64,000 nucleotides of DNA from Amoebophrya sp. A120 (GCA_905178155.1 CAJINV010000003.1:1253560-1317559); one strand, 5' to 3'. Positions 1 through 37,905 are shown, counted from the stretch's first letter. The notes: generated by a model not told the origin, from the letters alone. Translations and numbers: made by a program.

Positions 1-1
1 C

Positions 2-3000
2 CATGCCCACGACGGACATGAACTGCACCGAGCCCAACATCACACTTCCCGTAACGGACAGAGCCGATCCAATGCGCGTGAAGCTGCGCACGGAGATGCT
101 GGAGCCGAGCGAGGCAAAGTTCAACGCCGACATGCACGAACCGAGGCGTAGACTCGAGAACGCGGAGAGCCCGGAACCCAGGCGGGAGACAGCGCGCACG
201 GACAAAGTGCTCCCGGCATTCAAAAAGTCGAACATCGAGCACTGCGAACCGAATCTGGAAAGCGTGCGGATCGACAATCCCGATCCGACCTGACCCGCGT
301 CGAGGAGAGAAATGCTGCAACCGCACCGCGAGTGTCCGAAGAAGCTCATCGAGCTGCCGACCCGGCAGTACGCACGGATAGAGAGCGAGCTCCCGAGCGC
401 CACGTGGGCTAGGACAGACAGCGAACTGCCGAACCGACCGCACGAGAAGGTCGACAACGAGCTTCCCATCCGCATGAACCCGCGAAGACTCAAGGCGCTG
501 CTCAGGTTGAAGAACTCTTTCAGTGAGAACTCGTCGCCAAACCGGATCTGGCCCTTGACGGACAACGCGGATCCCAGTCGAGCGAGCCCGCGGACCGAGA
601 TGGCTGAACCCAAGACCATGAAGTCCATCATCGACAGCCCGCCCAAGCCGGAGCGCACCCGCGACTTGATGGAGAAGGAGCTGCCGATGCGCGCGTAGCT
701 GCGCAGCGACATTGAGCTTCCGACCGTCACCGCCGCGAGGGCGGACATCTGGTTCGACAGCCGGCACCATCCGAAGAAGGAGACGGTCGAGCCAAATCGG
801 GCGAAGGAACGCAGCGACAAACTGGAACCGATCGCCGTGGCCTCCAGCGCAGACAGCGAGCCGCCGAGTTGCGAGTTGGAGAACAGGGACAGTCCGGATC
901 CGAGACGTGTGTACGCACGCAGCGACATGGAGCTGCCAAACTGTGCGCAGTTCAGAATGGACAAAGCGCCGCCTCCGTCCATGTGGGAGAACACGGAGAG
1001 GCAGCTGCCCATACGGGCATACCCTCGGAGAGAGAGGGAGCTGGCCATGCTAGCCAAGCCCAATGCGCTCAAACTGCTTCCCATCCTGACGCGGCCAAAC
1101 AGCGACATCGAGGAGCCGAACGACGCGATGGCGCGACAAGAGAAGGTGGAACCCAGTTGGAAGAAGTCCAGGACGCTCATTTCCGCTCCTGCACGCAGGC
1201 GCTGCGCGATCGAGCAGGCACTGCCGGCACGCAGGAAGGTGCGCAGCGAGATGCCGGATCCGAGGCTGATAGAGTCCAAAACGGACATTTCCGTTCCGAA
1301 CCGCGAGAATGCGCGAATAGATAACGCGGAACTCATGCCGACGAAGCTGAGCAGGGACAGCGAGCCGCCCGCACGCACGCTGCTCAGGCAGGAGACGGAG
1401 GACCCAACGCGCAAGAAGTTCCGGATGCTGTAACTGCTGCCGACCTGCGCGGTGTGCAACAAACTGCAACCGGACCCGCACCGCATGGCACCGTACATCG
1501 AGATGCTGGAGCCGATGCGGATGAACTGCCTCAGCGAGACACTGGACGCCATGGTGCAGAAGTCCAGTACACTGCAGCGAGAACCCATGCGAGACAACGC
1601 CCGGATGCTGAGCGACGACCCGACGTCCAGTTCCCCAAACACGCTGGCTTGCGTGCCGAGGCGCGCCGACGCATCGGGGCCCAAGGAGATCGAGCTGCCT
1701 AACCGCGCGAAGCTGCGGATGGACAAGCTGGAGCCCATGAATCCGAAGGACAGCACGGAGATCTCCGCACCTAGCCGCGAGTAGGCACGCAGCGAGCAGG
1801 AGCTCGCGAGCGCGCAGTAGTCCATGACACTGCAGGAAATGCCGACTTTGGCGTCGCCCAGGATGCTGAAAGAGCTGCTGACGCGCAGGTACGACCGCAA
1901 GGATAGCGAGGATCCGACGTTCAGGTAATCCAGCACGGACAGTTGGCTGCCGAACCGGGCGGTGGTGCGCAGCGAGCAGGAGGAACCGAGGTTCAAGTAA
2001 TCCAAAACGCTCGCACGTCCGCTCATGCGGGCCAGGGATCTAAGGGATAAACTGCTTCCCACCTCCATCTGGTAGAGCACACTCATAGTGCCGCCACACT
2101 GCATGTTCCCGGCCGCAGACAAAGACGACCCGATGCGGCAGAAGTTGCGCAGGGACAGACTGGAGCCGATCTGCACAAAGTCCACGACAGACACGTTGGC
2201 GCCAAACCGCGCGTGGGTCCGGAGAGACATGCTGCTAGACAAAGTCGCGAAGTCCAGCGTGGAGATGCTGCCCTGACTTCTCAAGTGCGAGCGCATCGAG
2301 AGCGTCGACGCCAGGTGGACCGCGTTCATGATGGACAACGCTCCACTGATTCGCGCGAAGCCGGCACCAACGGAGAGGCTGGAACCAACGCGAGCGAAGC
2401 AGCGGAGGGAAAGGGAAGAGCCAACGGTCAAGTACTCCCCAATCGACAAGGAACTGCCGATCTTGCAGAAGCTGCGCAACGACAGCGACGAAGCGAATTC
2501 CGCCTGGTCCAGCACGGAAACCTGCGAGGAGATGCGCACGTGTTTTCCGCTCAGCGACAAACTGCTCCCGATCCGCACGAAGTTCCGCAACGACAGAGAA
2601 CTGCCGCAGCACGCCCGATCTAGCATGGACAAAGTCGAGCCCGTGCGAATCTTGCCGAACAGGGACATGGAAGACCCTAGTCTCGCGGTCGTGCGGATGG
2701 ACACCGTGCTTCCCAACAGGAAGAAGTCCAGCGCGGACAGCGTGGAACCTAACCTGGCGCTTGTTCGCAGCGAGAGACTGGATCCCAAGTTGGCGCAGTT
2801 CAACACGCTGCACTGTCCGCCGCACCGCGCCATGTTGCGCAAGGACACGCTGCTCGACAAACTTGCGAAGTTCAATAAAGAGCACGAGCCCGCCATCTTC
2901 GAAGTCGCGCTCGGTGCGTGCAGGCTGAACGCACTTCCACAACGCGCGAAGGACCGCATCGATAAAGCGGACCCAAGCGTGACGTAGTTCAGCACGGACA

Positions 3001-6000
3001 TGGCGGATCCCGAACGGCCGCAGCTGCGCAGACTAAAGGTAGAGCCCAGTTGCAGCTGATCCAATACCGACATGCTGGCACCTAACCGTGCGCACTGGTT
3101 CAAGCTCATGGCGGAACCAATCCTGGCGTACGCGCGCATGGAAAGCGACGAGCCGCAGTGCGAGAACGCGAGCGTGGAGAGTCCCGATCCAAGCCTCACG
3201 GTGGACCGGACGGATAAAGACGACCCGAGCAGCACCTGGTCCAGGACCGAGAGCTGTCCGTGCAGGCGTCCCTGAGGACCGCAGATGGATAACGAGCTTC
3301 CAAGTCGCGCAAACGCGCGCAGAGACATCGAAGAGCCGAACTGCGAGGTGGTCAACACCGAAATCGAGTCACCGGTGCGGACCACACTGCGGAGCGACAT
3401 GCTGGAACCCAAGTGGACGTTGTTCAGAGCGGACAGCGTCCAGCCCAGCTGCGCTTTCTTCACGACGGAAACCCGCGAGCCGAGACGAGCAAACTCGCGC
3501 ACGCTCAACGCGGAACCGAAGGACGCGAAGTTGAAGCACGAACAGATGCTGCCCAACCGCGCCTGCGACCTCACGGAGATGGACGACCCGAGGCTGACTT
3601 TGTCCAGCACGGAGTAGCTCATACATAAATTCGTCTTCGAAACCACGGAGAGTGCGGAGCCCAGGCGAGTGAAGGCGCGGAGCGACAGACAACTTCCGAA
3701 GTTCGCTTGATCCAAGGTGGACAGCGTGTGACCGAAGACGGTTCTAGCGTTCGCCGACATGGTGGATCCCAGACGGGTAGCGGCGCGCAGGCTGAGCGCC
3801 GAGCCGCACTGCACGTAGTCGAGCACACTCAAGTTACCCGCCAACCGCACCCAGTTTCCGCGGACGGAGAGGCTGCTGCCCAAGTTGATAGACTCCAACA
3901 AGCTCATCTTCGGCTGCAGGTACACCTTGCCCGCGGTGACGGAAATGGAGCTGCCGAGCCGGGCGACGTGACGCAACGACAAACTACTCCCGGCGGATGC
4001 CCAGTTCAGGATGGATAAAGTGCTTCCGCAGGTGATGCGGGACAGCACACTGATGTTGCTCCCGAGGCGCGCCGCGTTGCGCAAGGACAAAGAGCTGCCG
4101 AGGTTCATGAAGTCGTAGATCGACATGCGCGACCCGAAGCTGACTGTTTGTCTGATACTCAAGGTGGACCCCAGGCTGCAGTAATCCAATACAGACAGAC
4201 CGCTTCCGAGGAACATCTTGCTGAAAACGCTGCAGTTCGAGCCCATCCTTCCGACGCTGCGGAGCGAGATCGCGGAGCCGAAGTGCGCAAAATTGTAGGT
4301 CGAGATCGAGCTGCCACACCGGATGAAGGCGCGGATAGATAGCGACGAACTGAGGTGGATGCGACTCAAAATCGAGACTTCCCGCGACACGCGCGTGCGC
4401 CCGCGAACGGACACGCCGGAACCCACGCGCATGAACTGACGGAGGGACAAAACTGAACCCACTGTGCAGAAGTTCAAAACGGAGATGCAGCTGCCGCACC
4501 GCGTGTACTGCCGCACGGAGAGACTGCTTCCGAGGTCCAGTTCGGCGAGGACTGACAAAGAGTCACCCAACCGTACCGCGTTGAAGACGGAGCAACTAGA
4601 CCCCACGCGGAAGAATTCGCGCACGGACAAGCTGGATCCCACCATCGAGAAGCTCAAAACCGAGACCGCGCTCCCGAACCGAGAGGTGCTGCGTAAGCTC
4701 ACCGCAGAACCGCATTCCACGTGCTCCATGACGCTGAGGTCGGAGCCCAGTCGCGTGGACGCCAGAACGGAAAATGCGCTACCCACGCGCACGTAGTTGC
4801 GCACCGACAGGGCACTGCCGAAGCAGGCGAAGTCGATGATCGACGTGCGGCAGCCGAACTGCACGAAGGAACGGATGGACAGGGAACTGCCGAGCGCCAC
4901 CTGATCCAACGCGCTGAACTTGAAGCCCGCGCGGGTCCGCGACGCGATCGACACGCCCGAACCACAGCGCGCGACGGCTCGCATCGAAAGCCCGCTACCC
5001 AGCGACACGGAGTCCAGGATGGAATACTGGTTTCCGAACCGCATGAAGCTGCGGATGGAGAGACTGCTGCCGAGCGACACGGCATCCAGCGTCGAGAGCG
5101 AGGATCCGAAGCGAATCTGGTCGAACACCGAGAGCTGGGAGCCGTACCGTGCGACTGAACGCATGCTCACCGCAGACCCGAGGTTGAAGAAGTCGAACAC
5201 GCTCATGCGCGACCCGAGACTGCCGAAGGCTCGCACCGACATGGAGGAACCAAAGTTGGTGACCGCCAAGACTGAGCAGCTGGAGCCGAACGTGGTTTTT
5301 CCGTAGATCGACATGCGCGAGCCCATGCGGGTGGTGCCGCGCAGCGAAACCGCCGAGCCGAGATGGGCCCAGCCGAGTAAGGATAAGCTGGATCCGAACC
5401 GGCACTGCGAGAAGACGGACAGCGAGCTGCCCATCCGGGCGGTGGCACGCAGGGACAAGACGCTGCCGATGTGCAGGTAGTCGAACATGGAGCACTCGCC
5501 GCCGACGCGCACGAACGACCGCACGCTGATGGAACTGCCCAGGTTGCTGTAGTCCAGGACAGACAGGTTGGAGCCGAACGAGATCTTGTTGTAGATCGAG
5601 ATCGCGCTGCCGAGCCGCGCGTACGCGCGCAAGGATAACGAACTTCCGAAGGCCTGCGAGTCGTACACGGACAGTTGGCCGCCGACCCGGGACAGACCCC
5701 ACACCGAGACCGCGGAGCCAAAGCGTCCGGAGCCACGCAGGGAGAACGACGAGCCCAGCATGACGAAGTCCAAAGCGGACAACGCGGAGCCGAACCGCGC
5801 GAACGACCGCAAACTGACGCTGGAGCCGAGATGGACGCAATCCAGGGTGGACAGACTCATGCCGAACTTGACGCGGTTGAACACGGACATCACCGAGCCG
5901 CAGGCGCCCATGGCACGCAGACTGATGCTGGACCCCAGGTTGCTGAAGTTCAAGATCGACATCGACGAGCCGCAGGACAGACGACCGAACACGCTGGTGC

Positions 6001-9000
6001 CAGAGCCGAGTCGGGCGTACCCTCTTAGCGACAGACTCGACCCGAAGTGGTGTTGCATCAGCATGCTGCAGCTGGATCCGAGGCGAACCTGCGAGAACAG
6101 CGAGAATGAGCTGCCCAAGCGCGCGGTCGCGCGAATGGAGAGCGCCGAACCGAGCGTGCCCCACTGGAGCAGACTCAAGCTGGATCCAGAGATGCATCGT
6201 GAGTACACCGACATGCTGCTTCCCATGGCGGCCAAGGACCGGATACTGAAGGACGAGCCCATGTGGCAGTAGTCGAACACGGAAGCTTGGCAGCCCCAGC
6301 GAACCTTCGAGAACACCGAGAACGCTGAGCCCAATCGTGCGGTGCCGCGGCAGCTGACCGCAGACCCGTAACTGGCAAAGTCCAAAATCGACATGGCGCT
6401 CCCGAAGCGTCCGAAGGTACGCAGGGATAAAGACGAACCCAGGCCCACGTACTTCAGAATCGACACTGAACTGCCCATGCGTGCCTGCGAGTACACGGAG
6501 AAGGTGCTTCCGAACCGGCAGCTCGTACGGAGGGAGAGGTTAGACCCCAGGTGCACAAAGTCGAACACGGAAACTGCGTGGCCCATCTTGCCCATAGACC
6601 GCAACGAGAAGGAACTTCCCAAGTGCAGGTGATCCAACGTGGACATGGTGGACCCCATGCGCAGCTGCGAGAACACACTGACCGCGGACCCGACGCGGCC
6701 GAAGTTCCGGAGCGACACGGAAGAGCCGAGCGTCAGGAAATCAACCGTAGACACGGACGATCCGTAGCGACTCGCCGAGAAGACGGAGCAGACGGACCCG
6801 ATTCTCGCCATGGACCGCAGGGATAACGACGATCCCAAGGTCGCGAAGTTCAACACACTCACCTTCGACGCGAACCGGGCGTAGGCACGGATACTGAAAC
6901 TGGAACCCAGCGTGGTGGAATCCAATGTCGAGAGCTTCAACCCGCACTGCACCTTTCCGAGAACGGAGGCCGTGCTGCCGAGCCGCGCGACCGCGCGCAT
7001 CGACAGCGTCGAACCGAGGGAAGAGAAGTCGAACACGGAGAACAGCGATCCGGCGCGCACGAAGGAACGCACGGACACACTTGATCCGAGCTCGACAAAC
7101 TTCAGGATCGACATCGAGGAGGACAGCGTGACCCGGCTGAAGATCGAGGTGTTGCTGCCCAGCCGCACGAAGGCGCGCACGGAGAGTGTGGATCCGAGGC
7201 GGGTGGCGTCCAGAACGGAGATGCAAGACCCGAATCGCATCTCGCCGTAGGTACTGAACGAACTGCCCAACCGCTTCACGGCGCGCAGGGACAACGAACT
7301 TCCGAACGTGACGTGCTGCAGAATGGACAGGGAAGATCCGAACCTTCCGTAGCTGAACACGCTGCAGGCACTGCCCACCTTCATGATGGTACGCAAAGAG
7401 ACCGTGGACGCTAGACTGGCGAACTTCAGCACGGAGATCGTGCTGCCGAAGCGGCACTGGCTGAAGATCGACCACGAGGAGCCCATGCGAACCTGCGCGC
7501 GGATCGAGAGCATCGACCCGAGGCAAACGCTGTTGAAGGAACTGACCGTGGATCCGCACCGGGTCACGCCGAACAGGGACATGCGACTGCCCGCGCGGAC
7601 GAACCCGCGCATCGAGAGCATAGACCCAAGGTACACGGAGTCTAGTGTCGACAGCGAACTACCAACGCGGAACCGCGAGAACACGGACAAGTTCGAGCCC
7701 ATCATGACGAAGCTACGGATCGACGTGGTCGAACCGAGCGCCACGAAGTCGAAGACGGACAGGTTGCTTCCAAACTTCGTGTAGGACCTGACTGACAGAC
7801 TGCTCCCTAAATTCATGAAGTTCAACGCGGATAAGTTCGAGCCGAGGATAACCCGGTTGAACACGGACACCGCGGAGCCCGACCGCTGGAACTGCCGGAC
7901 GGACAGACTGGAACCGAATACCGCCGCGTCGCAGACGGAGAGCAAAGATCCCATGCACATCCGGCCAAAGATGGACGCGGACGACCCAAATTTGACGTAG
8001 CTACGGATGGAGAGACTGCTCCCTAACGTCAGCGCACCGACGACGGAAAGTTCGGAACCCAGGCGGATCTGTCCAAAGATGGAAAGCGTCGAACCGAACT
8101 TCGCGCGTCCGCGCACGGACAAGGTGGAACCAAGTGTCACAGCATCCAGGACAGAAAGCGCGCCCCCGAAGCGCGCCGCGCACAGCAGGGACAAGGTGCT
8201 TCCGAAGCGGCCCACCCCGCGCAGCGAGATCGAGGACCCAAACGTGCACGCCTCCAGAATGGACATACTGGACCCGAACACCGCACGCGAGAAGATCGAG
8301 AACGAACTTCCAGCCCGGATGTGCGAGCGCACGGAAAGGACGGACCCGAGGTGCAGCTGGTCCAAGCACGACAGATTGGAACCGCATCGGACCTGGGAGA
8401 AGGTCGAAACCGTGGACCCAAACCGCATGTAGCTACGAATCGACATCGCAGATCCGAGCAGAGCGACCTGGAAGGAACTCACGGTGGAACCCAGCCGGAC
8501 GCAGTTGAAGGCGGACAAGGTCGACCCGAAACGGATGAACGACCGAGTCGAGATCGAACTACCGAACTGCGCAAAATCCAAGATCGACGCGTGGTCTCCG
8601 AACCGCATGCAGGCACGTAATGAGACGGAACTTCCGAAGGTCATGAACTTCAACACGGACACCGAACTTCCCAAAAGAACGCGGCCGCCGTAGATGCTCA
8701 TGTTGCTGCCGAACCGGGCCGTGGCGCGGAGAGACAGCGTGGATCCCATGTTCATGAAGTCAATCACACTGCAGCTGCGTCCGCACTTGGTGTGGTGCCG
8801 GACGCTCAACGACGACCCGAAGCAGGTCCAATTCAACGTGGACAAACTGGAGCCCGCCACCATGCGGCCGAAGATGGAGATCGCGCTGCCGAGCCGGAAG
8901 GTGCCGCGGATCGACACCGAGCTGCCGTAGGTGCTGAAGTCCAACAAAGAAACGCTCGAGCCGCACTTCACCTGGCCGTACACGGAGTAGCCGCTACCGA

Positions 9001-12000
9001 AGCGGGCGATGTTCCGGACCGAGATGGTCGAGCCGAGCTCGAAGAAGTCCAGCAACGAGAAGCTGCTCCCCAAAGTCGTCTGCGAGAAGATGCTGAGGTT
9101 GCTGCCGAACCGCTGGAAGGCGCGAATGGAGAATGCCGATCCCATCTGGATGGTGTTCAACACGGACGCGTTGCTTCCCAGCGTCAACTTCGAGAACACG
9201 GACACGTTGCTACCAAACCGCACATAACTGCGGACGGACAGGGAGGAGCCGAGCGCGACGAAGTCGAGGAAGCTCATTTGGTTCCCGAACCGACCGTGCG
9301 AACGGAGAGAGAGACTCGACCCGAGCGCGACGAAGTCCACGACGGACAGGTTGGAACCGCAGCGGAAGAAGTTCCGCAGCGAGGTCGCCGACCCGAGGTG
9401 GAAGAAGTCAATCACGGACGCGCACGCCCCCAGCCGCGCGCCACGGAACACCGACATGGCGGAGCCCAGGCGAATCATCGCGCGGAGCGACACGCTGCTG
9501 CCAACGTTGGTCGAATCCAGCACCGAGAAGCAGCTGGCCAGGCGGCACTGGTTGAACACCGACAGGTTGGAGGCGAGGCGTAAATACGACCTTACGGACA
9601 AGGAGCTACCAAGCGCTGCGAACTGCAGGATGGACGTCGCGTCACCGAAGCGCGCGCAGCTCCGCACAGACAGTGAAGAGGAGCACGAGAAGAAGTTCAA
9701 CACGGAAGTCGCCGAACCGCACCGCAGTTGCGAGATCACGGACACGGAACTGCCAAACCGGATGAACTGCCGCAACGAGATCGAACTACCTAATTGAGTG
9801 AAGTTCATGATCGACATCTGCGACCCGAAGCGGGCGTGCGACCGGACGGAGAGGGAAGACCCAAACGCCGCGTTGTCCAGCAAGGACATGCTGCTGCCCA
9901 GATTAATCCTCTGGTACACGGAGATACCCGACCCGTACCGGATCGCGCCGCGCAGGGACAAAGACGACCCGATTTGCATGTAGTCGAGCACGGACGCGCC
10001 GCTGCCGAACCGCATCATGCTGCGGACGGAGAGCGAAGAAGCTAAGTTCACAAAGTGCAGCACGGAGAAGGTGTCTCCGAGTCGGACCTGCTTCAGCACC
10101 GAGCACGTGGAACCCAACTTCATGGCCCCGCGGAGCGAGCAGCTGGAGCCCGTGGTCAAAGTGTCAATCATGGACAGAGACGAACCTAACCTCGTTGCGC
10201 CGAACACGGAGATGGAGGAGCCCAGCCGCAGGTAGGAACGCATCGACAAGGTGGAGGATAAAAAGGTCAGGTCGCAGACGGACAGGCAGCTGCCGAACCG
10301 GGTTTGCGACATGACGCTGACGCCCGAGCCGAGTCGAATGTAGCTGCGCACCGAGATCGACGAGCCCAAGTGGGTGTAGTCGATCACGGAAATGTCCATG
10401 CCCGTGCGCACCAAACCACGCATCGACAAAGTGCTACCCAAGTTCTGGGATTCCATCACGGACATCGCCGCCCCGCACGTCAAGCTCGACAGCACGGAAA
10501 GGGATGAGCCGAAGCGCACGGCCTGGCGCAGACTCAACGCACTGCCAATCACGATGTGCTCCATGACGGACAGCGCAGAACCCAGCCTCACTTTGGAAAA
10601 GACCGAGCACGCGGAGCCAAGTCTGGCGTACTGCCGCAGCGAAATGGTGGAACCGGTACTCAAGAAGTCCAGCTGGGATAAAGAACTCCCCAACCGCACC
10701 CAGGACATGACCGAGGCCGCGGACCCGCACCGCACGTAACTTCGCAGCGACAGAGTGGAGCCGAGGGAGAGATAGTCCAACACGGACGCACTGGCACCGA
10801 ACTTCGTTCGAGACACGATGGAGAATCCGCTGCCCAGCCGCACGAAGGACCGCAGCGACAGGGACGAACCCACGCTCTCGGCGTCGATCAGCGAGATGGT
10901 GCTGCCGACGCGCACTTGCGAGAACACGGAAAGAGCGGACCCCACGCGTTGGTAGCTACGCAGGGACATGCTGCTCCCGAGCAAGTTGCTCTGCATCACG
11001 GACAAAGAGCTGCCGAACCGCGCGTTGCTGAAGACGGACATGGAGGACCCGATGCGGATGAAATTCCTCAGCGAGATGCTGCTGCCAATCGTGGCGCAGT
11101 CCAGCACCGAGATGGCGCTCCCGTACCGCGCAAAGGACCGCATCGAGACGGAACTGCCGAAGTGGATGAAGTTCAACACCGACAGCGTGGAACCCATGGT
11201 CACCTTCGAGAACACGGACAAATTCGATCCGAGCCGCTGGAAGTTGCGCATCGAGCACGAGGACCCGTGCGTGATGGCGTCCAGCACGGAGAACTGGCAG
11301 CCGAACCGCGCCTGGCTGAAGATCGAGAAGCTGGATCCCAGCCGGGCCATCGCACGCAGCGAGAAGCTGCTTCCCGGGGCCACGAAGGACAACGCGGAGA
11401 GCGTGCTGCCCAGCGCGATGCGCGAGTAGACCGAGAACGAGCTGCCCATGCGGCAGAAGCCGCGAAGGGAGAGAGCAGAACCCACGTTCGCCACGTTCAT
11501 GACGGAGGCGAAGCCGTCCGCGCCGATCTTCACCTTGTTGAACACTGAGATCACCGATCCGAACCGCGTCGCCGCGCGCACGGACAGGGACGAACCGCAG
11601 TGGAAGAAGTTGAACACGGAGCAACCGCCGTTCAGCCGGCCCGTGTTACGGCACGAAAGCGACGACCCGAGCGTGGCGAAGTTGAGTAAAGATAAACTGC
11701 TCCCGCTGCGGAAAGCGTTGTAGACGGACAACTGGCTTCCCATGCGCGCCGTGGACCGCAGCGAGGTTGCGGACCCGATGAACACGTAGTCGAACACGCT
11801 CATGCTGCCGCTTGCCCGCGTGAACGCGCGGATGGAGAGAGAAGAGCCGAAGCTCGAGCAATCCAGCAGCGACAAGTTGGAACCGCACCGGATCGTGTTG
11901 AAGCAACTGACCACGGACCCGAACCGCAGAAAGCTACGGACGGACACCGTGGAACCGAAGGCAGCAAAGTTCAACAGGGACATGCAGGAGCCGAGCATGG

Positions 12001-27000: not shown

Positions 27001-30000
27001 TTGAGCCGAGCCGGAGGAAGTTCCGCAGACTCAAACTGGACCCGAACTGGATGAAATCCAGCACGGACAAGTTGCTTCCCAATCTGGTCATCCCGAACAG
27101 GGAAAGCGAACTCCCCATCCTGGCAAACGACCGGAGCGACAGACTGCTGCCGAGCGTGATGCGGTCCAGGATCGAGAGGCAGGACCCAAACCTGGACATG
27201 CCGAATACGGACAAGCTGGACCCTAACCGGGCGAAGCCGCGCACCGACAGCCCCGATCCGATGTGGCAGGAGTCGAGGATGGACATGCTAGAACCCAGGC
27301 GGCACACCCCGTACAGCGAGAAGGAGGACCCAAGGCGCGAGAACATCCTTAACGAGAGACAGCTGCCCACGTTGATGAAGTCCAGGATAGAGTTGCTGCT
27401 CCCAAGTTTGCAGAACCCGTACACCGAGCACCCACTCCCCGTGCGGTAGAAGTTACGCAGCGACATCGAGGACCCGAGCACGAAGAAGTCCAGCGCGGAC
27501 AGACTGGATCCGATCTTCGTGGCGCCGAACACGGAAATGGAACTTCCGAGCCGGGAGAAGGAACGAATACTGCAGCCGGACCCGAGCATGATGTAATCCA
27601 GCACCGACAACGCGGAGCCTAACCGCGCCAGCCCGTAGACGGACAGACCGTTGCCAATCCGCGAATACATACGGACGGACAGGGAAGAAGTGAAGAACCC
27701 GTAGTCGAGCACGGACACCATGCTGCCCAGCAGCGCCATGCCGAAGAAGGACACGTTGGACCCGCAGCGGCTGAAGGACCGGAAGGACAGGGACGAGCCG
27801 ACCTGCACGAAGTCCAACACGGACAGGGACGACCCCAGGCGGTGGCAGCCGTACACCGAGATTTTACTGCCGAACCGCGAGTAGGACCTGGTGGAGAAAC
27901 TGGACCCGAGGAAGCTGCTGTCGAGCAGCGAGAACTGGCTCCCCAATCTGACCGTACCATACACGGAGTAACTGCTGCCGAACCGCGCGAAGCTGCACAG
28001 ACTCAAGCTCGACCCGAGGGATGCGAAGTCCAGCAGCGAGTACTGCGACCCGCAGCGGATGGTTCCGTAGGCGGACAACGAACTTCCGACGCGGCAGAAC
28101 GACCGCACGGAAAAGGAACTCCCGCACAGAATGTAGTCCGCGACGGACAGACTGGTGCCGAGCTTCATCACACCATAGAGCGATAAACTGGACCCCATGC
28201 GGCAAAACGACCGGAGGGATAAACTGCTCCCAAAAGTCGACGAGTCCAACACGGAAACGCAGCTGCCTAACCGCGAGATGCCGTACACGGAGTAGCTAGA
28301 CCCCAGCCGCATGAAGGAGCGGACGGACAGGCAAGAACCAATCTGCAGGCAGTCGAGGACAGATAGGCCAGATCCGATCCGCGAGAGACCATAAGTCGAG
28401 ATCGACGAGCCCAATCTTGCGAACGACCGCAGAGAAAGAGAGCTTGCCATGTGCACGAAGTCGAGCGCTGATAAGGAACTTCCGATGCGCGCGAACCCGT
28501 ACATGGAAATACTTGATCCCACCCGCATGAAGCCGCGGAAACTGCAGCTGGACCCGAAGTTGATGAAATCCAGCACGGACAACTGCGAGCCTAACCGGCA
28601 CATGCCGTAGATGGACGCGGAACTTCCCATGCGGCCAAAGCCGCGCATGGACAGGCAGGAGCCCATGCTGACGTAGTCCAGAATCGACACGCTGCTCCCG
28701 AGCTTCGCGATCCCGAACACGGAAATCGAACTCCCGAGGCGCATCATCGTCCGCAGGGAGAACGAAGACCCGAGCGTGACGCGGTCCAGTAGGGAAAGAG
28801 ACGATCCGAACCGGACCAGGCCGTACACGGACACGCTGCTGCCACAACGGGAAAACGAACGCATGGACAACGCGGAACCGAAGTTGGCGTAGTTCAAAAT
28901 CGACAGTTGCGAACCGATGCGGGTCATCCCGTACACGGAGCACCCAGAGCCCAACCGCGAGCACATGCGCATCGAAATCGAACTCCCGAAGTGCGCGAAG
29001 TCGAGCAGCGAGAAGCTGGAGCCGAGCAGGACGGCGCCGAACACACTGTAACTGCTGCCGAACCGGGATAAAGACCGCAAAGACAGCGATGAGCCGATCA
29101 TCGCGAAGTCCAGGATACTCATCGAGGACCCCACCCGCGCGACCCCGTACAAACTGCAGAAGCTGCCCAGGCGCAAAAACGACCTGAGCGAACAAGTCGA
29201 CCCGAAGGAGCCGGCGTCGAGAATCGACATGGAGGACGCGAGTCTGGTGATTCCGTAGATGGAGAGACTGCTCCCCAGCCGTAAAACGTTTCTCACCGAC
29301 AGCACACTGCCTAAATGCACGTAGTCGAGCAGACTGATGTTGGACCCCATGCTCGCGATCCCGTAAAGCGAAATTGCACTGCCGAGCTTGAGGAAGCTGC
29401 GCAGCGAGATCGTGGATCCCAAATGGAACGTGTCCATGATGGACACGCTGCTTCCGAGCAGGGCGAAACCGTAGGTACTGCAGGTCGACCCGAGTCGGAT
29501 GAAGGACCGGAGACTTAGCGTAGAACCGACCGACATCGCGTCGAGCAGGGATAAAGAGGACCCGAGCCTGGTCAACCCGAACACGGACACGCTGCTACCG
29601 AACCGCATCACCGACCGGAGGGACAGCGTCGAACCCAGCGAGATCGCGTCCAAGACGGAGAAACTGGATCCTAGCCTGGTCATCCCGAACACGGACAAAG
29701 AACTACCCAGCCGGATAAACGAGCGGACGGAGATGCTGGACCCGAAGCTGGCCATGTCCAGGATGGACAGCGTGCTGGTAAACGTCGTGAGCCCGTAGAT
29801 CGACAGCGTGCTGCCGAGCCGGAAGAACCTGCGCGTGGAGAACGCCGAACCGAGGGACACGTAGTCGAGGATGGAGAGACTCGATCCCAAGTTGCAGATC
29901 CCCATCACGGACAGACTGGACCCTAATCGAGAAAACGAGCGGACGGACATGTTACTGCCCACCAGCGCGAAATCCAGAATCGACAGCGAACTCCCGCACC

Positions 30001-33000
30001 GCGCCACACCGAACACGGACAGCGAGCTTCCCATCCGGTGGAAGGACCGCACGGAGAGGGAGGAAGCTAACCCGATGAAGTCCAGGATCGACATGGAACT
30101 CCCCAGCCGGCAGATGCCGAAGATCGAGGCGGTGCTGCCGAGTCGCATCATGGTACGCACGGACATCGCGGACCCCATGTGGAAGACATCCAGCACGGAC
30201 ATCTGCGAGCCGAACCGCACCATGCCGTAGAGCGACAAAGTCGACCCAAACCGCATCATGCTGCGCAGCGAAAACGACGACCCGAGGGAGAAGGTGTCCA
30301 GCAGCGAGACGCTGGAGCCGTACCGCATCACCCCGAATACGGAAATGCTGGAGCCCATCCGCGCGAACGATCTTAGCGAGATCGCGGACCCGACGCTGAT
30401 GAAATCGAGCACGGACAGCGCGGACCCGACGAAGCTCAACCCGTACACGGAGTAACTGGACCCTAATCGGCAGGCGGACCGGAGGGACAACGCGGATCCG
30501 ATGGTGAAGAAGTCCAGCAGAGACACCTGCGAGCCGATCTTCGCAACCCCGTAGGTCGAAACCGAGGAGCCAAGCCGGACGAAGCTACGGATACTGAACG
30601 TGGACCCGAGTCCCTGGAAGTCCAGCACGGAAACGCCGCTTCCAAGTTTCAGCATGCAGTACACCGACAGCGCGGACCCGAACCGCGTGAAGCTCCGTAG
30701 ACTCATGGTGCTGCCGACGCTGACGAAATCTAGGATGGAGCAACTGCTCCCCAATTTCGCGATGCCGTACACGGAGAGCGAACTGCCCATGCGGATGAAG
30801 TTCCGCAGCGACAACGCGGAACCAACCTGCACCATGTCGAGAACCGAGATGCTGGAATTCAGGTTCACCATACCGTAAACCGACAACGAACTCCCGATGC
30901 GCAGGTAACTCCGGATGCTCATGCTGCTACCTAGTTGAAAGTAATCCAGCACGGAGCAGCTGCTCCCGAGCGTGAGCAGGCCGTAGGTGCTCATCGCGGA
31001 ACCGAGCCGCGAGAAACCGCGCGTGGACAGACTGGAACCGCAGCTGACGAAGTCCAGAATGGAGAAGCAGGACCCGATCCGGGTCATGCCGTACACGGAG
31101 AAGCCGGAGCCGAACCGGTGGAAGCCGCGGAGGGAGAGAGAACTACCAAAATTCACGTAGTCCAAAATCGACACGTTGGATCCCAACCTTGCCATCCCGT
31201 ACACGGACAACGACGACCCGAGGCGGCACATACTGCGGCAACTCAAACTGGACCCGAAGTTGACAAAGTCGACTAAAGATAAAACCGACCCGAGTCGGCA
31301 CAGTCCCATGGCGGAGATCGTAGATCCTAACCGGAGGAAACTTCGTAACGACAGGTCGGACCCGAAGTGCACGTAGTCCAGAACCGATAAAGCGGACCCG
31401 AGTCTCGTGGTTCCGTACACGGAAATGCTGCTCGACAATCGGCTGTACGACCGGAGGGACAAACTCGATCCTAGAGAAACGTAGTCCAGCACGGACACGG
31501 ACGAGGCCATTCTCGCGATGCCGTAGATACTGCAAGAACTTCCGCACCGCACGAAACTCCGGATGGACAGCGAGGAACACAAATTCAACGCGCCGTAGGC
31601 GGAGAGACTGGATCCGAAGTACACGTAGGAACGCAGGGACAGGGAACTGCCCGCGAACACGTAGTCCAGCACGGAGAGGGAAGAACCTAATTTCACGTAC
31701 CCGTAGACGGAGAACGTCGAGCCTAACCTCGTGTAGCTGCGCATGGACAGGGAGGAACCCAGGTGCAGGAAATCCAAAATCGAGAAGGCGGAACCCATGC
31801 GCGCGGTACCGTACACGGACAGGCCGGAACCCCACCTACAGAATGACTTCACGGAGCACGAAGACCCGAGACTGACGTAGTCGAGACACGACATCGCGGA
31901 CCCGAGCCGCGCGATACCGTAGATCGAGGTCGCCGACCCGGCGCGGCAGAAACTACGGACGGACAGACCAGAACCCATGCTGACAAAGTTCAGCACGGAG
32001 ATGGACGAACCGAGCAGCGTCAAACCGTAGACGGACAGGCTCTTCCCGAGTCTGCTCAACGCGCGCACCGAGGCGCAACTGCCCAGATGTACGAAGTCCA
32101 GGGTGGAGAGACTGGACCCTAATTGGCCAATCCCGTACAGCGAGAAGCTGCTTCCGAACCGCGTGAACGTGCGCATTGACAGCGCGGAGCCGATGCTGGT
32201 GTAGTCGAGGACGGACAGCGAGGACCCGAACCTGGCCAGCCCGTAGATGGACAACCCGGACCCGAGGCGCCCGAAGGAGGTCAGGGAGACCGTGGACCCC
32301 ATGTGCGCGAAGTCGAGCACGGAGAGCGCGGACCCCAGCCGGCTCATGCCGTAGACGGAGAGCGCGGATCCGTACCGGCAGAAACTACGGACGGACATCG
32401 AGGACCCGAGCGTGTAGAAGGCCAGGATCGAGACCGCGGACCCGAGGCGACTCACCCCGTACACGGACAGCTTGTGGCCGAACCGCCCGAAGCTCTTCAG
32501 CGACAGCGAACTCCCAAACATGCACCAGTCGACGATGGAGAAGGCGGAGCCCAAGCGCACGATCCCGAACACGGAGATACTGGACCCGACGCGGGTGAAG
32601 GACCGGATGGACATCGCACTGCCCAGCTCGATGTAATCCAAAACGGAGACGCTGGACCCGCACCGCGTGATCCCGTAAACGGAAAAGGCGCTTCCCATCC
32701 GCGCGAAGGACCGGAACGAGATGGAACTGCCGATGCTCACGTAGTCCAGCACGGACATGGCGGACCCGAGCAGCCCGATTCCGTACAGACTCAGCGCGGA
32801 CCCCGCCCGCACAAAGTTGCGGATACTGATGCTGGACCCGAAGGACGCGTAGTCGAGCAGCGACAACGAACTCCCCAGCATGCCGAACGAGTACAGCGAG
32901 CAGGTCGAGCCGAAACGCGCAAAACTCCGGAGGGAGAACGAACTCCCGACGGAGGCGAAGTCCGTCAGACTGAAGGAACTTCCCAGCCTACTCAGCCCGT

Positions 33001-36000
33001 ACAGCGACAAGCTGCTGCCGAGCCGCCCGTAGCTGCGCAGCGATAAGGCGGACCCGAAGGCGATGTAGTCCAGGGTACTCAAACTACTCCCTAACCGGTG
33101 CACGCCGAAGGTCGAGAGCGAGGACCCCAGCCGGAGGAAACTGCGGCACGAGAACGTGCTCGAGAGGATCACGTAGTCCAGCACCGACATGGCGGATCCT
33201 AATCTTGAAGCGCCGTACACAGACAGGGAGCTGCCCAACCGGCCGCAGTTCCGCACGGAGAGCGAGGAGCCAAAGCTGATGTAGTCCAGCACGGACACGC
33301 TGGACCCGCACTTGGTAAACCCGTACACGGACAGAGAGCTTCCCATGCGACCCAGCGTTCGCACCGACAGGGTGCTGCCCAGACTGATGAAGTCCAGCAT
33401 GGAGAGCGAGCTTCCTAGTCTGGCGAGCCCGAACACGCTCATGGCCGATCCTAGTCGCGCGAACCCGCGGCAGCTCATGCCACTTCCGAGCGAAAACATG
33501 TCCAGCAGGGATAAAGCCGATCCGCATCGCCCCTGCCCAAAAATCGACAACGCGGAACCTACGCGCGCGTAGCACCGGAGCGACAGACTGCTCCCCAAGT
33601 GGTTCGAGTCCAACACGGAGAGCTCGGCGCCTACTCGCGCCAGGTAGAAGGACGAAAAAGCCGACCCGAGCCGCGTGTAGCTCCGGATCGAGAACGCGGA
33701 ACCGAAGTTCACGAAGTCGATCACACTCATCGCGCTACCAAACCTGGCAATGCCGAACAGCGACATGGAGGATCCCAGTCGGAAGAACGACCGCATGGAC
33801 ATCCCGGACCCCAGGTGCACGAAGTCGAGAACACTCATGCTGCCGCCCAACCGGGCGCACCCGTAGAGACTCATGGTGGATCCGAGTCGGGCCAGGGACC
33901 GCAGACTGAAGCTCGACCCGCACGTGGAGAAATCCAACACGGACAGCCCGCTGCCGAACCGGCCCATCCCGTACAGACTCAGGGTACTGCCGAGCCGCAC
34001 GACGCCACGGATGGAGACGCCACTGGACAGCGAGACGAAATCCAGCACGGACAACGCACTGCCCATGCGCGCGATACCGAAGACGGAAAGCGTGCTGCCG
34101 ACCCGCATAAACTTAGACAGGGAAAAGCTCGAACCGATGGATACGCAATCCAACACGCTCATTCCACTGCCGAACCGGGTCAAGCCGTACACGGAGCAAC
34201 TGGAGCCTAATCGCGCGAAGGTGCGGCAGGAGAGCGAGCTGCCGACGGACATGGCGTCCAGCAGCGACAGGTTGGACCCCATCTGCGCCACTCCGTAGAC
34301 CGACAGCGACATGCCGAAGCGCGCGAACGACCGCACACTGCAGCTGGAACTCAGGTGCGCGAAATCCAGCACCGACAGACTGGACCCGATCAAGCCGCAC
34401 CCGTACACGGACATGGAACTGCCGAGGCGCGCGAACGATCGGAGCGACATCGAACTGCCCATGCACGCGAAGTCCAGCACGGAGAGGTTGCTGCCAAGCT
34501 TGGTGATGCCGTAGGCGGACAGACTGGACCCGAAGCGCACGCAGTTTCGCACGGACAGCGAGCTGCCGAACGACAGAAAGTCCAAGCAGGACATGGAACT
34601 GCCGAGCCGGCCAAATCCGTAGACGGACAAGGAGCTTCCCAGCCGCGTGTAGGAGCGCATGGAGCACGAACTGCCGAAGGTGACAAAGTCTAAAACCGAG
34701 ATCGCCGACCCAAGTCTCGCCACCCCGAAGACGGAGATGCTGGACCCCACGCGGCTGAAGGTGCGCACACTCATGCTGGAGCCGAAGTGGATGAAGTCCA
34801 GCACGGACAGGCTGGATCCTAACCTCGCGGCCCCGTACACGGACATGGAACTGCCGTACCGCACCAGCGCGCGCAGCGACATGCTGCTGCCCATGGTCAG
34901 GAAATCCAGCACGGAGAGCGAACTCCCGAGTCTCGACAGCCCGTAGACCGACACGGCGTGCCCGATGCGCCCAAACCGGCGGATTGAGAGCGAACTGCCG
35001 AAGTGCGCGAAGTCGAGCAGGGACACCGCGGACCCGAGCCGCGCGTACCCGTAGATACTGCAGGAGGACCCTAACCGCGCAAACGTTCGCACGGACACGC
35101 CGCTCCCGAAGCCCACGAAATCCAGTACGGAAAGCGAACTCCCGATCCGCGCGGTGCCGTACACGGAGAGCGACGACCCCAACCGCAAAAAGGACCGCAG
35201 CGAGGTGCAACTCCCAAAGTGTCCGCAGTCCAGCACGGACAGCGAGGATCCCAGCCTCGTGAACCCGTAGACGGACAGACTGCTGCCCACGCGCCCGAAC
35301 CCGCGTAAGCTCATGGAACTACCAAAGTGGCCGAAGTCTAAGAGGGACAAAGAACTGCCGATGGAGGTCATGCCGTACACGCTCATTGCACTTCCAATGC
35401 GGTGGAAGGACCGCACCGAGATCGTGCTGCCGATCGACGCGTAGTCCAGGATGGAGAACGCGGACCCGAGCGTGGCCACCCCGTACACGGACAGGGAACT
35501 CCCGATCCGGATGTAGCTCTTCAGGGACATGGAGCTGCCCATGTTGACGAAGTCCAGGATCGACATGTTGGACCCCAGTCTTGTCAGTCCGTACACGGAG
35601 AAGGTGCTGCCTAAGCGGACAAAGGACCGCAGACTCAGACTACTGCCGATGTGGGTGAAGTCCAGGATGGAGCAGGAGCTGCCGAACCGCGCCACCCCGA
35701 AGGTGGACAGCGCGCTGCCCAGGCGGACGAAGCTCGTGGTCGAGACGGACGACCCAAAGTACGCCTGCTGCCCGACGGAGAGAAAGCTCCCGATCCGGGT
35801 GTTCCCGAACACGGACACCGTGCTGCCGACCCGGAGGAAGTTCCGGATGGACACGGAGGACCCAAAATGCGCGTAGTCCAACACCGACATCAGCGACCCG
35901 ATCCGGGTCATCCCGTACACGGATATGATGCTTCCCGCGCGCAGGAACGACCGCAGACTCATGGAGGACCCGAGCAAGGAGCAATCTAGCATGGAGAGCG

Positions 36001-37160
36001 AGGACCCGATCCGGGACAGCCCGTACACGGAGCAAGAACTCGACAGTCGGACGAAACTCCTACTGGACAACGAGCTCCCAATGTTGAAGAAGTCCAGCAC
36101 GGAGAGCGAACTCCCGATCTTGCTGTAGCCGTACACGGAGCAGGTGGATCCGAGGCGCGCGAACGCGCGGCAACTGATGCTGGACCCCAGGGACACGAAG
36201 TCAAGGACGGACAAACTGCTGCCGAGGAAGCCCAGGCCGTACAGACTCATCGCGGACCCGAGCCGCAGAAAGTTCCGCACCGACATGCTGGATGAGAAGT
36301 GCGCGAAGTCCAGGATCGACAGCGTACTGCCCAGCTGGCTCAGTCCGTACACGGACATGGTCAGGCCGATCCGCGCGTAACTCCGGACGCTCAAGGCACT
36401 CCCGATGTGCACAAAGTCCAAAATCGACAGGTTGGACCCCAACCGCCCCATGCCGTAGCAACTGGCGCCGGACCCGATCCGGCAGTAGGCGCGGAGGGAG
36501 AGTGCGGAGCCCATGCTGGCGAAGTCGAGCACGGACAGGGAGGACCCGATTCGCGTCACGCCGTACACCGAGAAGCTGCTGCCCACGCGCCCGAAGGACC
36601 GCAACGAGAGCACGCTGCCGATGTAGCACACGTCCAACAAAGACAGCACGCTTCCCATGCGCAGTAACCCGTACGCGGACAGACTGCTGCCGTACCGGGC
36701 GAAGCCCCGGACGGAGATGCTGGACCCGCAGCTGATGTAGTCCAGGATACTCAGCATCGACCCCATGCGGCTCATGCCGTACATGGAAAGACTGGACCCG
36801 CACCGCTGGTACTGCCGGATGGACAAGGAACTACCCAAAGAGACGAAGTCCAGCACGGAGTGCGAGCTGCCCATGATGGCCTTGCAGAACACACTCAAGT
36901 TCCCGCCCATGCGCGTGAACGCGGTCACGGACAGCGAACTCGCCAGCTGCGTGAACCCGAGCACGGACATGCTGCTGCCGAACCGGGTCCACTGGAACAC
37001 GGACAAGTTGGACCCGCAGCGGGCGAAGTACCGCAGCGAAAAGGAGGAACTGAACGACACGAAGTTGAACACGGATAACCGGTGCCCGAACATCACGAAC
37101 TGTCGCACGCTCATCCCCGCGCCGAAGAACCCGTCGCCGAACACGGACAGGGAACTGCCT
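2..37160 (-). repeat. Coding array of ~1,030 degenerate 36-nt (12-aa) units with 108-nt (36-aa) higher-order periodicity
   Basis: Recurrent plus-strand words such as gtccagcacggac, gctgccgaaccgcgcgaa and ccgtacacggac correspond to minus-strand SVLD, FARFGS and SVYG. Units are conserved at protein level and diverged at DNA level. Confidence 0.95.
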
Positions 37161-37905
37161 AATTTGGTCATCTGCCGCACGGACAAAGCCTCGCCGAAGG
37201 TGGTGTCCTGCGCCACGGAGAGCTTGTTCGCGACCACGGTACCCGCACTGCTGTCGGACGCCAGCTGCTCGCTCGCGATCGACGTGCGGCCCGCTAATCT
37301 CGTGTCGGACACCACGGAAAGCGTCTTCCCGAGGTTCACGGCGTCGGTGACGGACAATTTCGTGTGGAACAAAAGCTCCTCGTCCTGCCGAAGGGTGATG
37401 TAGTCCACCTTCGTTGACTCGCCGCCCACTTCCGTGGCCTGTTGTGGTTGTCGGTTGAGTTCGGATTTTGCATTCAATTGTTCTTAACGCAAAACAAAAG
37501 GTCGTGCTGTAAGCGCTGCGAAGCTCTGAAAAAAAATATTCTGAATTTAGTGCATGACGATACCTATGATATATTTGCAAAAAATTGTAGTTTTTTTTTG
37601 TATACCTCTTCCTCCTTCGCAATGACCAACGCCCCTCGGACCTGATCGTCCTCTGAGACGCCTGGGTTGCGGTATATGCTCCATTTTCGCACACCGTTGT
37701 AACGGAAGGCAATTTGTGGATTCTCGTTGTTTCGCGGATCGATATCGATGGGACCCAACAGCGAGATCTCACCGACCCGCGAAATCAGCACGAAGGCCTC
37801 CGTTTGTAGGAGGAAGGTGCTAAAAAAGAAAAACAGCAAGACCTGCAACAGGTTCGCAAAGAAAGAACCACCGCTGCTGCTGCCCTTCTGGGCACTTCGC
37901 GCCAT
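2..37905 (-). CDS. Giant secreted 12-aa-repeat protein (predicted beta-solenoid or beta-helix fibre), >=12,579 aa, 3'-partial; join(37905..37606, 37438..<2)
   Basis: The minus frame with codons at 2-4, 5-7, ... translates to regular GS[S]LS[VL]xxxxx repeats wherever sampled (pos 2-61 LSVTGSVMLGSVQFMSVVGM; ~36.7 kb GSSHSVLDFVSLGSSLSIRQYQRCGSSLSMYGMSRMGSMLSILDYISC). The ORF track lists no minus ORF ending in this frame between 1 and 37.4 kb, and all plus-strand 'MELPSR..' shadow ORFs share one frame. This implies no stop and no frameshift. The first upstream in-frame stop is TAA at 37484-37486, inside the intron. Exon 1 joins in phase 0 (…IAKEEE|ATEVGGESTKVDYITLRQD…). Confidence 0.93.
37439..37605 (-). 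other. Canonical GT-AG intron (167 nt) of the giant gene
   Basis: Minus strand reads GAG|GTATAC…CAACAG|GCC. It is AT-rich, contains stops in both flanking frames, and gives a phase-0 join. Confidence 0.85.
37795..37905 (-). other. Putative signal peptide of the giant protein (MARSAQKGSSSGGSFFANLLQVLLFFFFSTFLLQTEA)
   Basis: Basic n-region, hydrophobic h-region and a T-E-A cleavage-like site. The frame is open further upstream to ATG 38691, so it could instead be a signal anchor. Confidence 0.65.

Follow-up and report, generated by a model that had tools for sequence, protein, structure and literature searches.

The giant frame and its gene

The window examined here is a 64,000-nt stretch of the Amoebophrya sp. 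A120 genome (C3:1253560-1317559, part of a 115.5-Mb assembly), and positions given without a contig name are window positions. Its minus strand carries one frame without a stop from 37483 down to 2, or 12,494 codons, and translation of the reverse complement shows no stops, as an earlier note on this DNA had stated. In 80 kb of fetched sequence the frame continues beyond the low-coordinate window edge to a total of 18,586 codons with 0 N inside, and terminates at a stop at C3:1235282-1235284. The frame belongs to a real nuclear gene of ~61.4 kb (C3:~1230845-1292250, minus strand) with ~13 exons. The encoded protein, as modelled from predicted exons, would have ~19,500–19,800 amino acids (aa) and a mass of ~2 MDa. 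Judged from its sequence, the gene has the architecture of a tail fibre or tailspike chaperoned by a Peptidase_S74 domain.

The number of stops expected in the giant frame from the base composition of the strand is 454, giving P(no stop) ~1e-199, and the other five frames over the giant exon show 146–579 stops each. The GC content is 0.59–0.63 over the giant exon, 0.41–0.42 in the ~4 kb upstream of the gene and 0.48–0.57 in the rest of the window. The exon extends below the window to about C3:1235314 and has a modelled length of 55,684 nt. By itself it encodes 1.95 MDa with an isoelectric point (pI) of 10.9, a net charge of +1,107, 13 Pro and 465 Cys (2.5% Cys), so that the single polypeptide of >1.3 MDa proposed earlier is borne out and exceeded. 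The gene had been described as missed by the open reading frame (ORF) track; the listing omits the frame solely because it runs past the window edge, and the gene also extends past the giant exon, into further 3′ exons.

The window part of the frame is made up largely of S (23.5%), L (13.6%), G (10.8%), R (7.7%), V (7.7%) and F (6.7%), with Pro at 7 of 12,494 residues (0.06%), in agreement with the S/L/G/V/R/F-rich, Pro-poor composition reported before. The Gly-Ser turn reported at every 12 aa is also found, with 769 cases of 'GS' at spacing 12, and autocorrelation displays a super-period of 36 (identity 0.48 at lag 36, with 0.35 at both 12 and 24). With an iterated profile of 36 columns, 90% of the giant frame is covered by 467 units of 36 aa. 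Their consensus is GSSLSLRSFARL / GSSLSVFGFARL / GSSLSVLDFVxL. Ser at position 5 of each 12-mer shows a conservation of 0.96–1.00, Gly1 and Ser2 are ~0.9 conserved, and Arg7 and Arg11 in the first unit reach 0.85 and 0.81. The longest stretch free of indels has 109 units (3,924 aa). The register is almost perfect in the initial ~8,000 aa; in the final ~10,000 aa about every second super-unit brings an irregular unit, often longer by 2 or 12 aa. A 14-residue unit with a 2-aa insertion ahead of LSV (for example GSVSKVSVL, SSVTQVSII) recurs in the C-terminal 10,000 aa of the giant exon (window ~13500 to C3:1235314). It is shared with the small 3′ exons and, as GSVFSLSVL in P0004, with homologues, and may act as a conserved kink or bulge.

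At the DNA level the units share ~48% nucleotide identity (~42% at the amino acid level), and the proportion of differing synonymous sites (pS) is 0.61, which is near saturation. Nucleotide identity stays at or below 75% between any two units and at or below 67% between any two 324-nt blocks; a recent repeat expansion is rejected on the latter ground. Tandem Repeats Finder yields just three short arrays, the units having drifted too far apart in DNA sequence. With this divergence the array must be old, and its copies too different for an assembler to mix up. Both TCN and AGY codons are used in large numbers in the invariant Ser columns, thus it is the amino acid that is conserved and not the DNA. 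Two DNA-type sequencing runs hold all sampled words of the stretch, and estuary metatranscriptomes hold parts of it. The giant frame is an old, protein-selected sequence and no assembly artefact.

The stop after '...GITLFVFLVM' ends the giant exon but not the gene, as ~11 small exons are found downstream on the same strand. The extension beyond the window that had been proposed for finding the C-terminus therefore gives the end of the frame, while the gene itself goes on. Nine small open pieces with the same repeats, in changing frames, lie at C3:1232072-1235142 and total at least 514 aa. The first 3′ intron candidate, of 172 nt, is the sole canonical GT..AG pair that keeps both the frame and the 12-aa register (...SLRSMGRM|GAVASVLDFVHC...). 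The penultimate piece (L007:7843-8148:-) reads ...LHGSWASDSSIPATSDVRLKKNIRPLYESL and carries TSDVRLKKNIRPL. The last piece (L007:7292-7993:-) reads ...LNPVSFQLKQSGESKQLYFGFIAQELEQLYPSLVVESNRADYKAVNYQDIIAIVTL... and then runs through an acidic, heptad-like tail to a stop near C3:1230845; the tail after the S74 domain reads VESRVAVVESVAEEHAEVLEESGDKIKLLEEELLRLKK.

This last piece matches Pfam PF13884 (Peptidase_S74) at 30.7 bits (E 3.9e-7, profile positions 18–57), the curated cut-off being 22 bits, and scanning the whole genome returns 32.9 bits for C3:1231091-1231207. The start of the profile, absent from this piece and including the SDxRxK site, corresponds to the preceding exon, where a Ser-x4-Lys motif, SDVRLK, is present; the join of the two exons is modelled. 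In endoNF (S911/K916) and MyRF (S587/K592) the Ser-Lys dyad of the S74/ICA domain lies five residues apart (PMC8326128), and SDVRLK has this spacing and thus the dyad motif. A phmmer search of the S74 exon against the PDB gave sub-threshold rows only, with the T4 long-tail-fibre tip 6f45 at E 0.21. The earlier note could not assign the protein to a characterised family, a position overturned by the S74-chaperoned fibre architecture and by the many smaller relatives described below.

Four loci and their relatives

A search of the genome with a 1,000-aa slice shows three further loci, on C13, C11 and C2. The C13 locus has an open frame of 26,593 codons in a 79,779-nt exon (C13:1788264-1868042), and its 744-aa first piece, giant exon and about ten small pieces sum to ~28,900 aa. 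The open frames at C11 have 7,502 and 11,458 codons (sum ~19,500 aa), and those at C2 have 4,334 and 1,988 codons and more, over a span of ~97 kb. PF13884 is found exactly 4 times in the genome (C3:1231091, C13:1874126, C11:3083062 and C2:13002179), in all four cases just 3′ of a giant repeat locus and on the same strand. C13 and C11 display the same split S74 domain, with SDKRRK and SDQRLK.

The longest annotated exons are 79,744 bp in strain A25 and 44,016 bp in A120 (PMC7789003, Table 1). The A25 value is close to the 79,779-nt exon at C13, and the A120 value is smaller than two of the frames found here. A 10,000-aa query (region 1-5000) showed no relative of 5,500–17,500 aa, the size range to which this result applies. 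Because the longest A120 exon falls short of the 55.7- and 79.8-kb frames and no family protein of that size range was found, the giant genes are probably truncated or split in the public annotation, although a different assembly version could also account for the A120 value. The literature searched for giant or repeat proteins in Amoebophrya and for Peptidase_S74 in dinoflagellates gave nothing relevant. Giant exons are thus already present in published gene models, but the family itself is undescribed.

At the 5′ end of the gene in the window, run X1 provides a contig of 1,843 nt that aligns to 36669-37437 and 37605-38678 and omits 167 nt with plus-strand ends CT..AC. Shifting the cut by one gives intron 37439-37605, GT..AG on the minus strand, which joins 37606 to 37438; the exons on both sides are in phase 0. 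Since this contig is spliced, the X1 library holds cDNA. The splice to a 100-aa exon proposed earlier is thus seen in RNA, and the exon counts exactly 100 codons from ATG 37905. However, its frame is open to ATG 38691, or 362 codons, and the equivalent frames at C13 and C11 are open for 260–370 codons upstream of the hydrophobic stretch and share an M(L)ETEP start, an RRRRSR cluster and a Ser/Arg-rich make-up. ATG 38691 is therefore likelier than ATG 37905 as the true start. C3, C13 and C11 all show the hydrophobic stretch, an AxA-like site before FVL (ADA|FVL in C13, AQA|FVL in C11), then FVL(I/V)S..G.I(S/T)LLGP(I/V)DIDP, and the head motif matches residues 493–525 of Vitrella P0170 (E 5e-7). 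The hydrophobic stretch may be a signal peptide or cleaved internal signal, or a type-II anchor, and the 262-residue basic region before it is probably cytosolic. Of the signal peptide described earlier, the stretch with its cleavage context stands, but it may act internally or as an anchor behind the basic extension. The first long in-register run of repeats begins at aa 144 of the open frame (window 37051), and the LSVTD / LSVVSD-type 12-mers ahead of it are also present in the viral-type homologues P0003 and P0079. The X1 contigs extend to 39361. A 37-codon upstream ORF (38692-38805, minus, ATGATG...) lies in the frame of the main ORF, and its TAG abuts ATG 38691; it could be regulatory if the transcript begins further upstream. 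The features are listed in Table 1.

Table 1. Features of the giant gene inside the window (window positions).
Feature	Position	Strand	Basis
Exon 2, giant repeat exon, window part	2..37438	-	No stops; start 37438 fixed by RNA contig
Start of exon 2: transitional, less regular 12-mers (LSVTD / LSVVSD type) ahead of the 36-aa array	37052..37438	-	Translation
Intron 1, 167 nt, GT..AG	37439..37605	-	Skipped by run X1 RNA contig (record 5)
Conserved head/cap motif FVLISRVGEISLLGPIDIDP...IAFRYNGVRKW, preceding the stalk	37606..37794	-	Conserved in C13 and C11 paralogues
Exon 1 in the version of the earlier note, 100 codons from ATG 37905: hydrophobic leader and head motif	37606..37905	-	Translation, transcript contig
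Hydrophobic stretch FFANLLQVLLFFFFSTFLL, then TEA|FVL (AxA-like cleavage context)	37807..37863	-	Translation; same layout in paralogues
In-frame N-terminal extension, 262 codons to ATG 38691, Ser/Arg-rich, low-complexity	37906..38691	-	ORF 37564..38691; covered by X1 contigs

ORFs flanking the giant gene are of cellular type (PPR protein, methyltransferase, Copia-type element) or show no Pfam match, and no viral families are found among the nine flanking ORFs scanned with Pfam. The 3′ neighbours of the gene, a PPR/TPR-repeat protein and a class-I methyltransferase (L008:4309-7413 and L008:9359-10000; C3:~1217868-1223559, minus), are ordinary cellular ones. A 1,402-aa ORF at L012:3893-8098 (C3:1177452-1181657, minus) with RVT_2 and retroviral SH3-like domains is a Copia-type retrotransposon. 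Upstream of the gene, also on the minus strand, five long ORFs (399–1,624 aa) at 42400-45199, 51631-53322, 54207-55406 and 57862-62736 give no Pfam match at E<=1e-3 and may be lineage-specific genes. At C3:~1191700-1203100 (L010-L011; 62–50 kb below the window), after a stretch of 5,356 N (C3:1186204-1191559), there is a GC-rich tandem array with a unit of ~0.6–1.3 kb and several frames open on both strands (PRFGDAAASRGGPKFPDSAMPQQAGAGQSCP... on plus), which looks like a satellite rather than a gene.

The search for relatives by repeat profile that had been suggested was run with a profile of 108 repeat columns (A1) against 1.84 billion cluster representatives, and yields 1,915 representatives at E<=1e-3, of which 742 reach E<=1e-10; among the matches listed, the greatest length is 4,226 aa. 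The homologues come from EukProt and MMETSP transcriptomes and from NCBI records of Vitrella brassicaformis CCMP3155, Durusdinium trenchii and Polarella glacialis. PF13884 follows the same repeats in 9 of the 9 closer homologues scanned with Pfam, and complete transcriptome ORFs carry repeat and S74 domain in one polypeptide. The order in the closer homologues is repeats, LHGxW...SDxRxK, ...LRPVS(F/Y)...(Y/F)GFIA(Q/D)E, and a coiled coil.

Head and stalk of the C13 paralogue are colinear with residues 491–922 of Vitrella P0170 (E 8e-51). P0170 (1,205 aa) has a Cys-rich, TSP1-like N-terminus, marginally below the Pfam cut-offs, then the head motif and a GSSLSV stalk, and no S74 domain is detected at its C-terminus. 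P0170 uses the stalk in a different way, and its make-up hints at extracellular adhesion. The Durusdinium relative carries VIT and VWA domains. The more distant P0079, P0121 and P0003 display LSVTG-type 12-mers, and two of these three end in a SDYRIKENV motif; the C-terminus of the P0079/P0121 type (SDYRIKENV...GLIAHE) is typical of S74 by eye. P0079 is found on the IMG/VR contig GVMAG-M-3300024261-61, by its name a giant-virus metagenome-assembled genome. The nearest ESM-Atlas clusters are mostly viral, a weak lead as recognition is low. A tblastn search with a 288-aa slice of the giant gene against 50,697 phage records gave no match.

Predicted fold of the stalk

The structure prediction of a slice as monomer, which the earlier note had called for, was run with AlphaFold2 (AF2) on 288 aa of the giant gene, with an alignment of 98 in-register slices. 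AF2 folds single chains, and an interweaving of coils from several chains is outside its reach. The model is all-beta and solenoid-like, with short strands broken at GS, RS and LD, a weak predicted local distance difference test score (pLDDT) of 61.9 and a predicted template modelling score of 0.58. The weak Foldseek rows for the slice are all beta-solenoids. In VIA-align, right-handed beta-helices come first, with EtpA (8vba) at Z 17.0 and a root-mean-square deviation (rmsd) of 2.6 Å over 192 residues, followed at Z 10–13 by SufBD, the secretion domains of FHA, HMW1 and HxuA, K5 lyase, phi29 gp12 and tailspikes. Left-handed helices superpose badly (rmsd 11–12 Å).

The complete homologue P0155 was modelled with an alignment of 59 family members. 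Its stalk has a pLDDT of ~80 and four strands per 24 residues, its S74 region reaches 70–87, and its C-terminal helix (residues 519–588) ~90, this helix being that of the homologue and not the giant gene's own tail. The top Foldseek rows are three chains of the MyRF ICA domain 7dc3 (probability 1.00, E 0.06, TM-score 0.40–0.43 on the target), with 22–23% identity over 115 columns, and a T5 tail fibre with its chaperone is found at rank 12. The P0155 stalk aligns with right-handed beta-helices (pentapeptide-repeat protein, EtpA, VacA p55 and tailspikes) at Z 12–13.5. As 228 residues of the model align onto 196 of the pentapeptide-repeat protein 6fls, the models suggest a four-faced right-handed helix with ~24 aa per coil.

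At 0.48 nm per rung, a stalk of ~19,100 aa would measure ~0.25 µm at 36 aa per coil, ~0.38 µm at 24 and ~0.76 µm at 12 per chain, and the C13 product would be ~1.5 times longer at each coil geometry. These modelled values, with ~0.38 µm at the geometry of the AF2 models, replace the ~0.5 or ~1 µm of the earlier note. As a prediction, the beta-solenoid proposed there is upheld by the all-beta models and their beta-helix neighbours.

Several known repeat folds were considered and set aside. Neither exon 1 nor any of three 1,000-aa slices reached a Pfam cut-off. LpxA is the best profile match to the PDB (E 0.04), but an LpxA-like left-handed hexapeptide helix is rejected because Hexapep (PF00132) scores 17.4 bits vs a cut-off of 27, no 18-residue period is found (autocorrelation at lags 6 and 18 is not above the reporting floor of 0.16) and left-handed helices give the high rmsd noted above. 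Bactofilin (PF04519) does not match the three slices and matches only the distant homologue P0018. The two-partner-secretion adhesins (FHA/EtpA) show no Pfam match, and the likeness to them is structural only. The quadrilateral beta-helix of pentapeptide-repeat proteins also gives no Pfam match, and the period here is 12/36 aa.

Assembly, rival explanations and role

From N- to C-terminus the protein would consist of a probable basic Ser/Arg-rich region, a hydrophobic signal or anchor, the head motif, a stalk with about 520 of the 36-aa units, a short neck, the S74 domain and a coiled coil. We consider it probable, with fair confidence, that the ~61.4-kb gene encodes a homotrimeric, S74-chaperoned beta-helical fibre of the secretory pathway, probably used for host contact. 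Trimerisation, self-cleavage and a stable fibre are expected by analogy with characterised S74 systems (endosialidase, phage tail fibres and MYRF). For its activity the ICA domain needs a trimer, kept together by a C-terminal coiled coil, and it is set free once the beta-helical stalk has formed (PMC8326128). The chain would enter the secretory pathway and its repeats would fold into a parallel beta-helix; three chains would be joined through their C-terminal S74 domains and coiled coil, and the Ser-Lys dyad would then cleave the chaperone off. The predicted product is a stable, strongly cationic trimeric fibre (pI ~10.9, net charge ~+1,100 per chain) of a quarter to three quarters of a µm. 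The trimer suggested earlier finds backing of this analogical kind in the C-terminal S74 chaperone domain. The simplest answer to the folding problem would be that each chain folds its own helix during translation and trimerises late, which agrees with the single-chain AF2 models.

Its most likely use would be in host contact or attachment by the infective dinospore, which would carry the fibre either on its surface or inside trichocysts. Trichocysts are formed in strain A120 at the sporont stage and are regarded as serving host attachment (PMC9478091). Pointers to an extracellular setting are the AxA|FVL leader context, the 2.5% Cys and the fusions to TSP1-like (Vitrella) and VWA/VIT (Durusdinium) domains; an extracellular or extrusome location and host attachment are conjecture. 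A bolder proposal, put forward tentatively, is that the parasite stretched a tail-fibre-type module, which it shares with giant viruses, into four proteins of ~19,000–29,000 residues that form sub-micrometre cationic trimers to catch hosts. On that speculative proposal these would be among the largest polypeptides known and by far the longest beta-helical fibres, and dinospores might display them or shoot them out, perhaps with trichocysts as the source.

Phage fibres and spikes with an S74 chaperone have ~1,000–1,400 aa. Like the modelled protein described here, these (endosialidase endoNF, T5 pb1, K5 lyase, GA-1 gp12) display a beta-helical stalk followed by S74 with Ser-x4-Lys, then a trimerising helix to which a putative coiled coil would correspond here, and the phage chaperone is cut off after assembly (PMC8326128). 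They differ in belonging to virions, whereas the ~19,600-aa protein is encoded by a spliced cellular gene with a secretory leader and its own 12/36-aa repeat, shows no recognised catalytic or receptor-binding head and has no BLAST-level match to phage records. MYRF and MrfA are eukaryotic and cellular, with an S74/ICA domain adjoining a beta-helical stalk, and 7dc3 is the best Foldseek row. However, the MYRF stalk has few rungs and a DNA-binding domain is released, whereas here the stalk, with thousands of rungs, would be the product; the orientation relative to the membrane also differs. EtpA, FHA, HMW1 and VacA p55 are long secreted beta-helical adhesins and the best structural neighbours (Z 12–17), but they show no sequence relation and no two-partner-secretion domain is found here, and they are monomeric with ~19–20 aa per coil.

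Among the relatives by sequence, P0079 and P0121 (3.4–4.2 kaa) share the 12-aa LSVxG-type repeats (profile match E 8e-37), to which the first repeats of the giant gene are similar, but they are without the 36-aa A-B-C super-repeat, are Asn/Thr-rich where the giant protein is Ser/Arg-rich, and are 5–7 times shorter. The short myzozoan homologues (450–860 aa MMETSP/EukProt ORFs; metagenome up to 3,172 aa) have the same GSSLSxRSFxR / GSxLSVLDF repeat, neck (LHGxW...SDxRxK) and S74 domain, with a coiled coil after it, and Vitrella P0170 shares the head motif. Their stalks are 10–40 times shorter, however, many alternate two unit types (24-aa period), and some are fused to TSP1-like or VWA domains. 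In size the protein belongs to the class of titin and PKZILLA-1, the C13 paralogue (~29,000 aa) being in titin's range. The InaZ ice-nucleation protein is a beta-solenoid with a 16/48-aa periodicity, in which the unit is likewise nested in a three-unit super-repeat. The folds and functions of titin, PKZILLA-1 and InaZ are unrelated, and the giant protein, unlike them, is encoded almost entirely in one exon.

Several points weigh against the trimeric host-contact fibre. The AF2 model of the slice is weak, with only 1 of 5 models above a pLDDT of 45, and Foldseek against the PDB gives nothing significant for the slice or for the P0155 model. The coil may have 12, 18, 24 or 36 aa per rung, in single-chain helices or in an interwoven triple helix. 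The ratio pN/pS between units averages ~0.8, so that selection is visible in the motif columns and not in the average. The 3′ exons, including the S74 domain split over two of them, are modelled from frames and repeat register and not from RNA. The RNA consists of one run labelled 'RNA?' that covers only the 5′ 5 kb; the raw-read RNA runs X12–X14 gave zero reads and count as no test. Support comes from the gene sequences and from partial RNA. The folding of a 2-MDa chain nucleated from its C-terminus is mechanistically awkward, and function and cellular location are conjecture.

That the frame is untranslated, as the by-product of a periodic satellite or of assembly, is refuted in practice. 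A skewed composition, a strict period and open stretches of 300–500 codons in some other frames would suit such an origin, but the chance of a stop-free frame is vanishing beside the many stops in the other five, the repeat is barely detected in the DNA, the invariant Ser persists through both codon families at ~48% DNA identity, a spliced RNA contig exists, two DNA-type runs hold all sampled words, and homologous proteins occur in independent transcriptomes. An origin of the four loci as endogenised giant-virus fibre genes, viral cargo or fossils, might be read from the contig of P0079, from the mostly viral ESM-Atlas clusters and from the typically viral S74 domain. We hold it to be very unlikely, because the genes have spliceosomal introns (one RNA-confirmed), lie on four contigs with cellular-type neighbours and no viral families in the nine flanking ORFs, and keep intact frames of up to 26,593 codons; the head and stalk module is common to the chromerid Vitrella and dinoflagellate transcriptomes, and the 36-aa super-repeat is not seen in viral relatives.

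A monomeric single-chain beta-solenoid rod, with the S74-like domain as a relic or in another role, would agree with both AF2 models, in which the stalk is a self-contained right-handed beta-helix, and with the monomeric adhesin helices (EtpA, FHA, HMW1, VacA p55) among the structural neighbours. It appears improbable, although less so than a viral origin, since S74 is kept in 4/4 giant genes and 9/9 closer homologues scanned, Ser-x4-Lys is intact in all three giant genes read (C3, C13, C11) with a predicted coiled coil after the domain, and in every characterised case the S74/ICA domain works only as a trimer (PMC8326128). The alternative that deserves most weight keeps the same molecule and gives it another role, as extrusome shaft, cyst or spore wall, or internal ruler, and not as adhesin. 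The A120 trichocysts, themselves thought to mediate attachment (PMC9478091), would fit a shaft, the small relatives in free-living and photosynthetic myzozoans indicate a family not specific to parasitism, and a register kept strictly over ~8,000 aa would be apt for a ruler or paracrystal. Fusions of relatives to TSP1-like and VWA domains point instead to adhesion, and a structural role is a possible but clearly less probable reading than host contact; the present data separate none of these roles.

If made as modelled, these proteins would be among the largest known, one paralogue being encoded in a 79.8-kb single exon and reaching ~29,000 residues. The trimeric fibre, if true, would carry the principle of S74-chaperoned fibres beyond virions and a single family of transcription factors to a cellular structure of organelle scale. 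It would also pose a folding question, namely how a 2-MDa chain that takes about an hour to translate, with its assembly domain made last, stays competent until it is trimerised, and would offer a natural system for length control in beta-helices. The kinship with P0079, on a contig named for a giant virus, makes gene exchange between giant viruses and alveolates testable. Amoebophrya is a syndinian parasite of dinoflagellates, and Syndiniales control dinoflagellate blooms; to our knowledge their attachment machinery is molecularly unknown. The giant fibre genes would provide a concrete molecular candidate for host attachment in this group.

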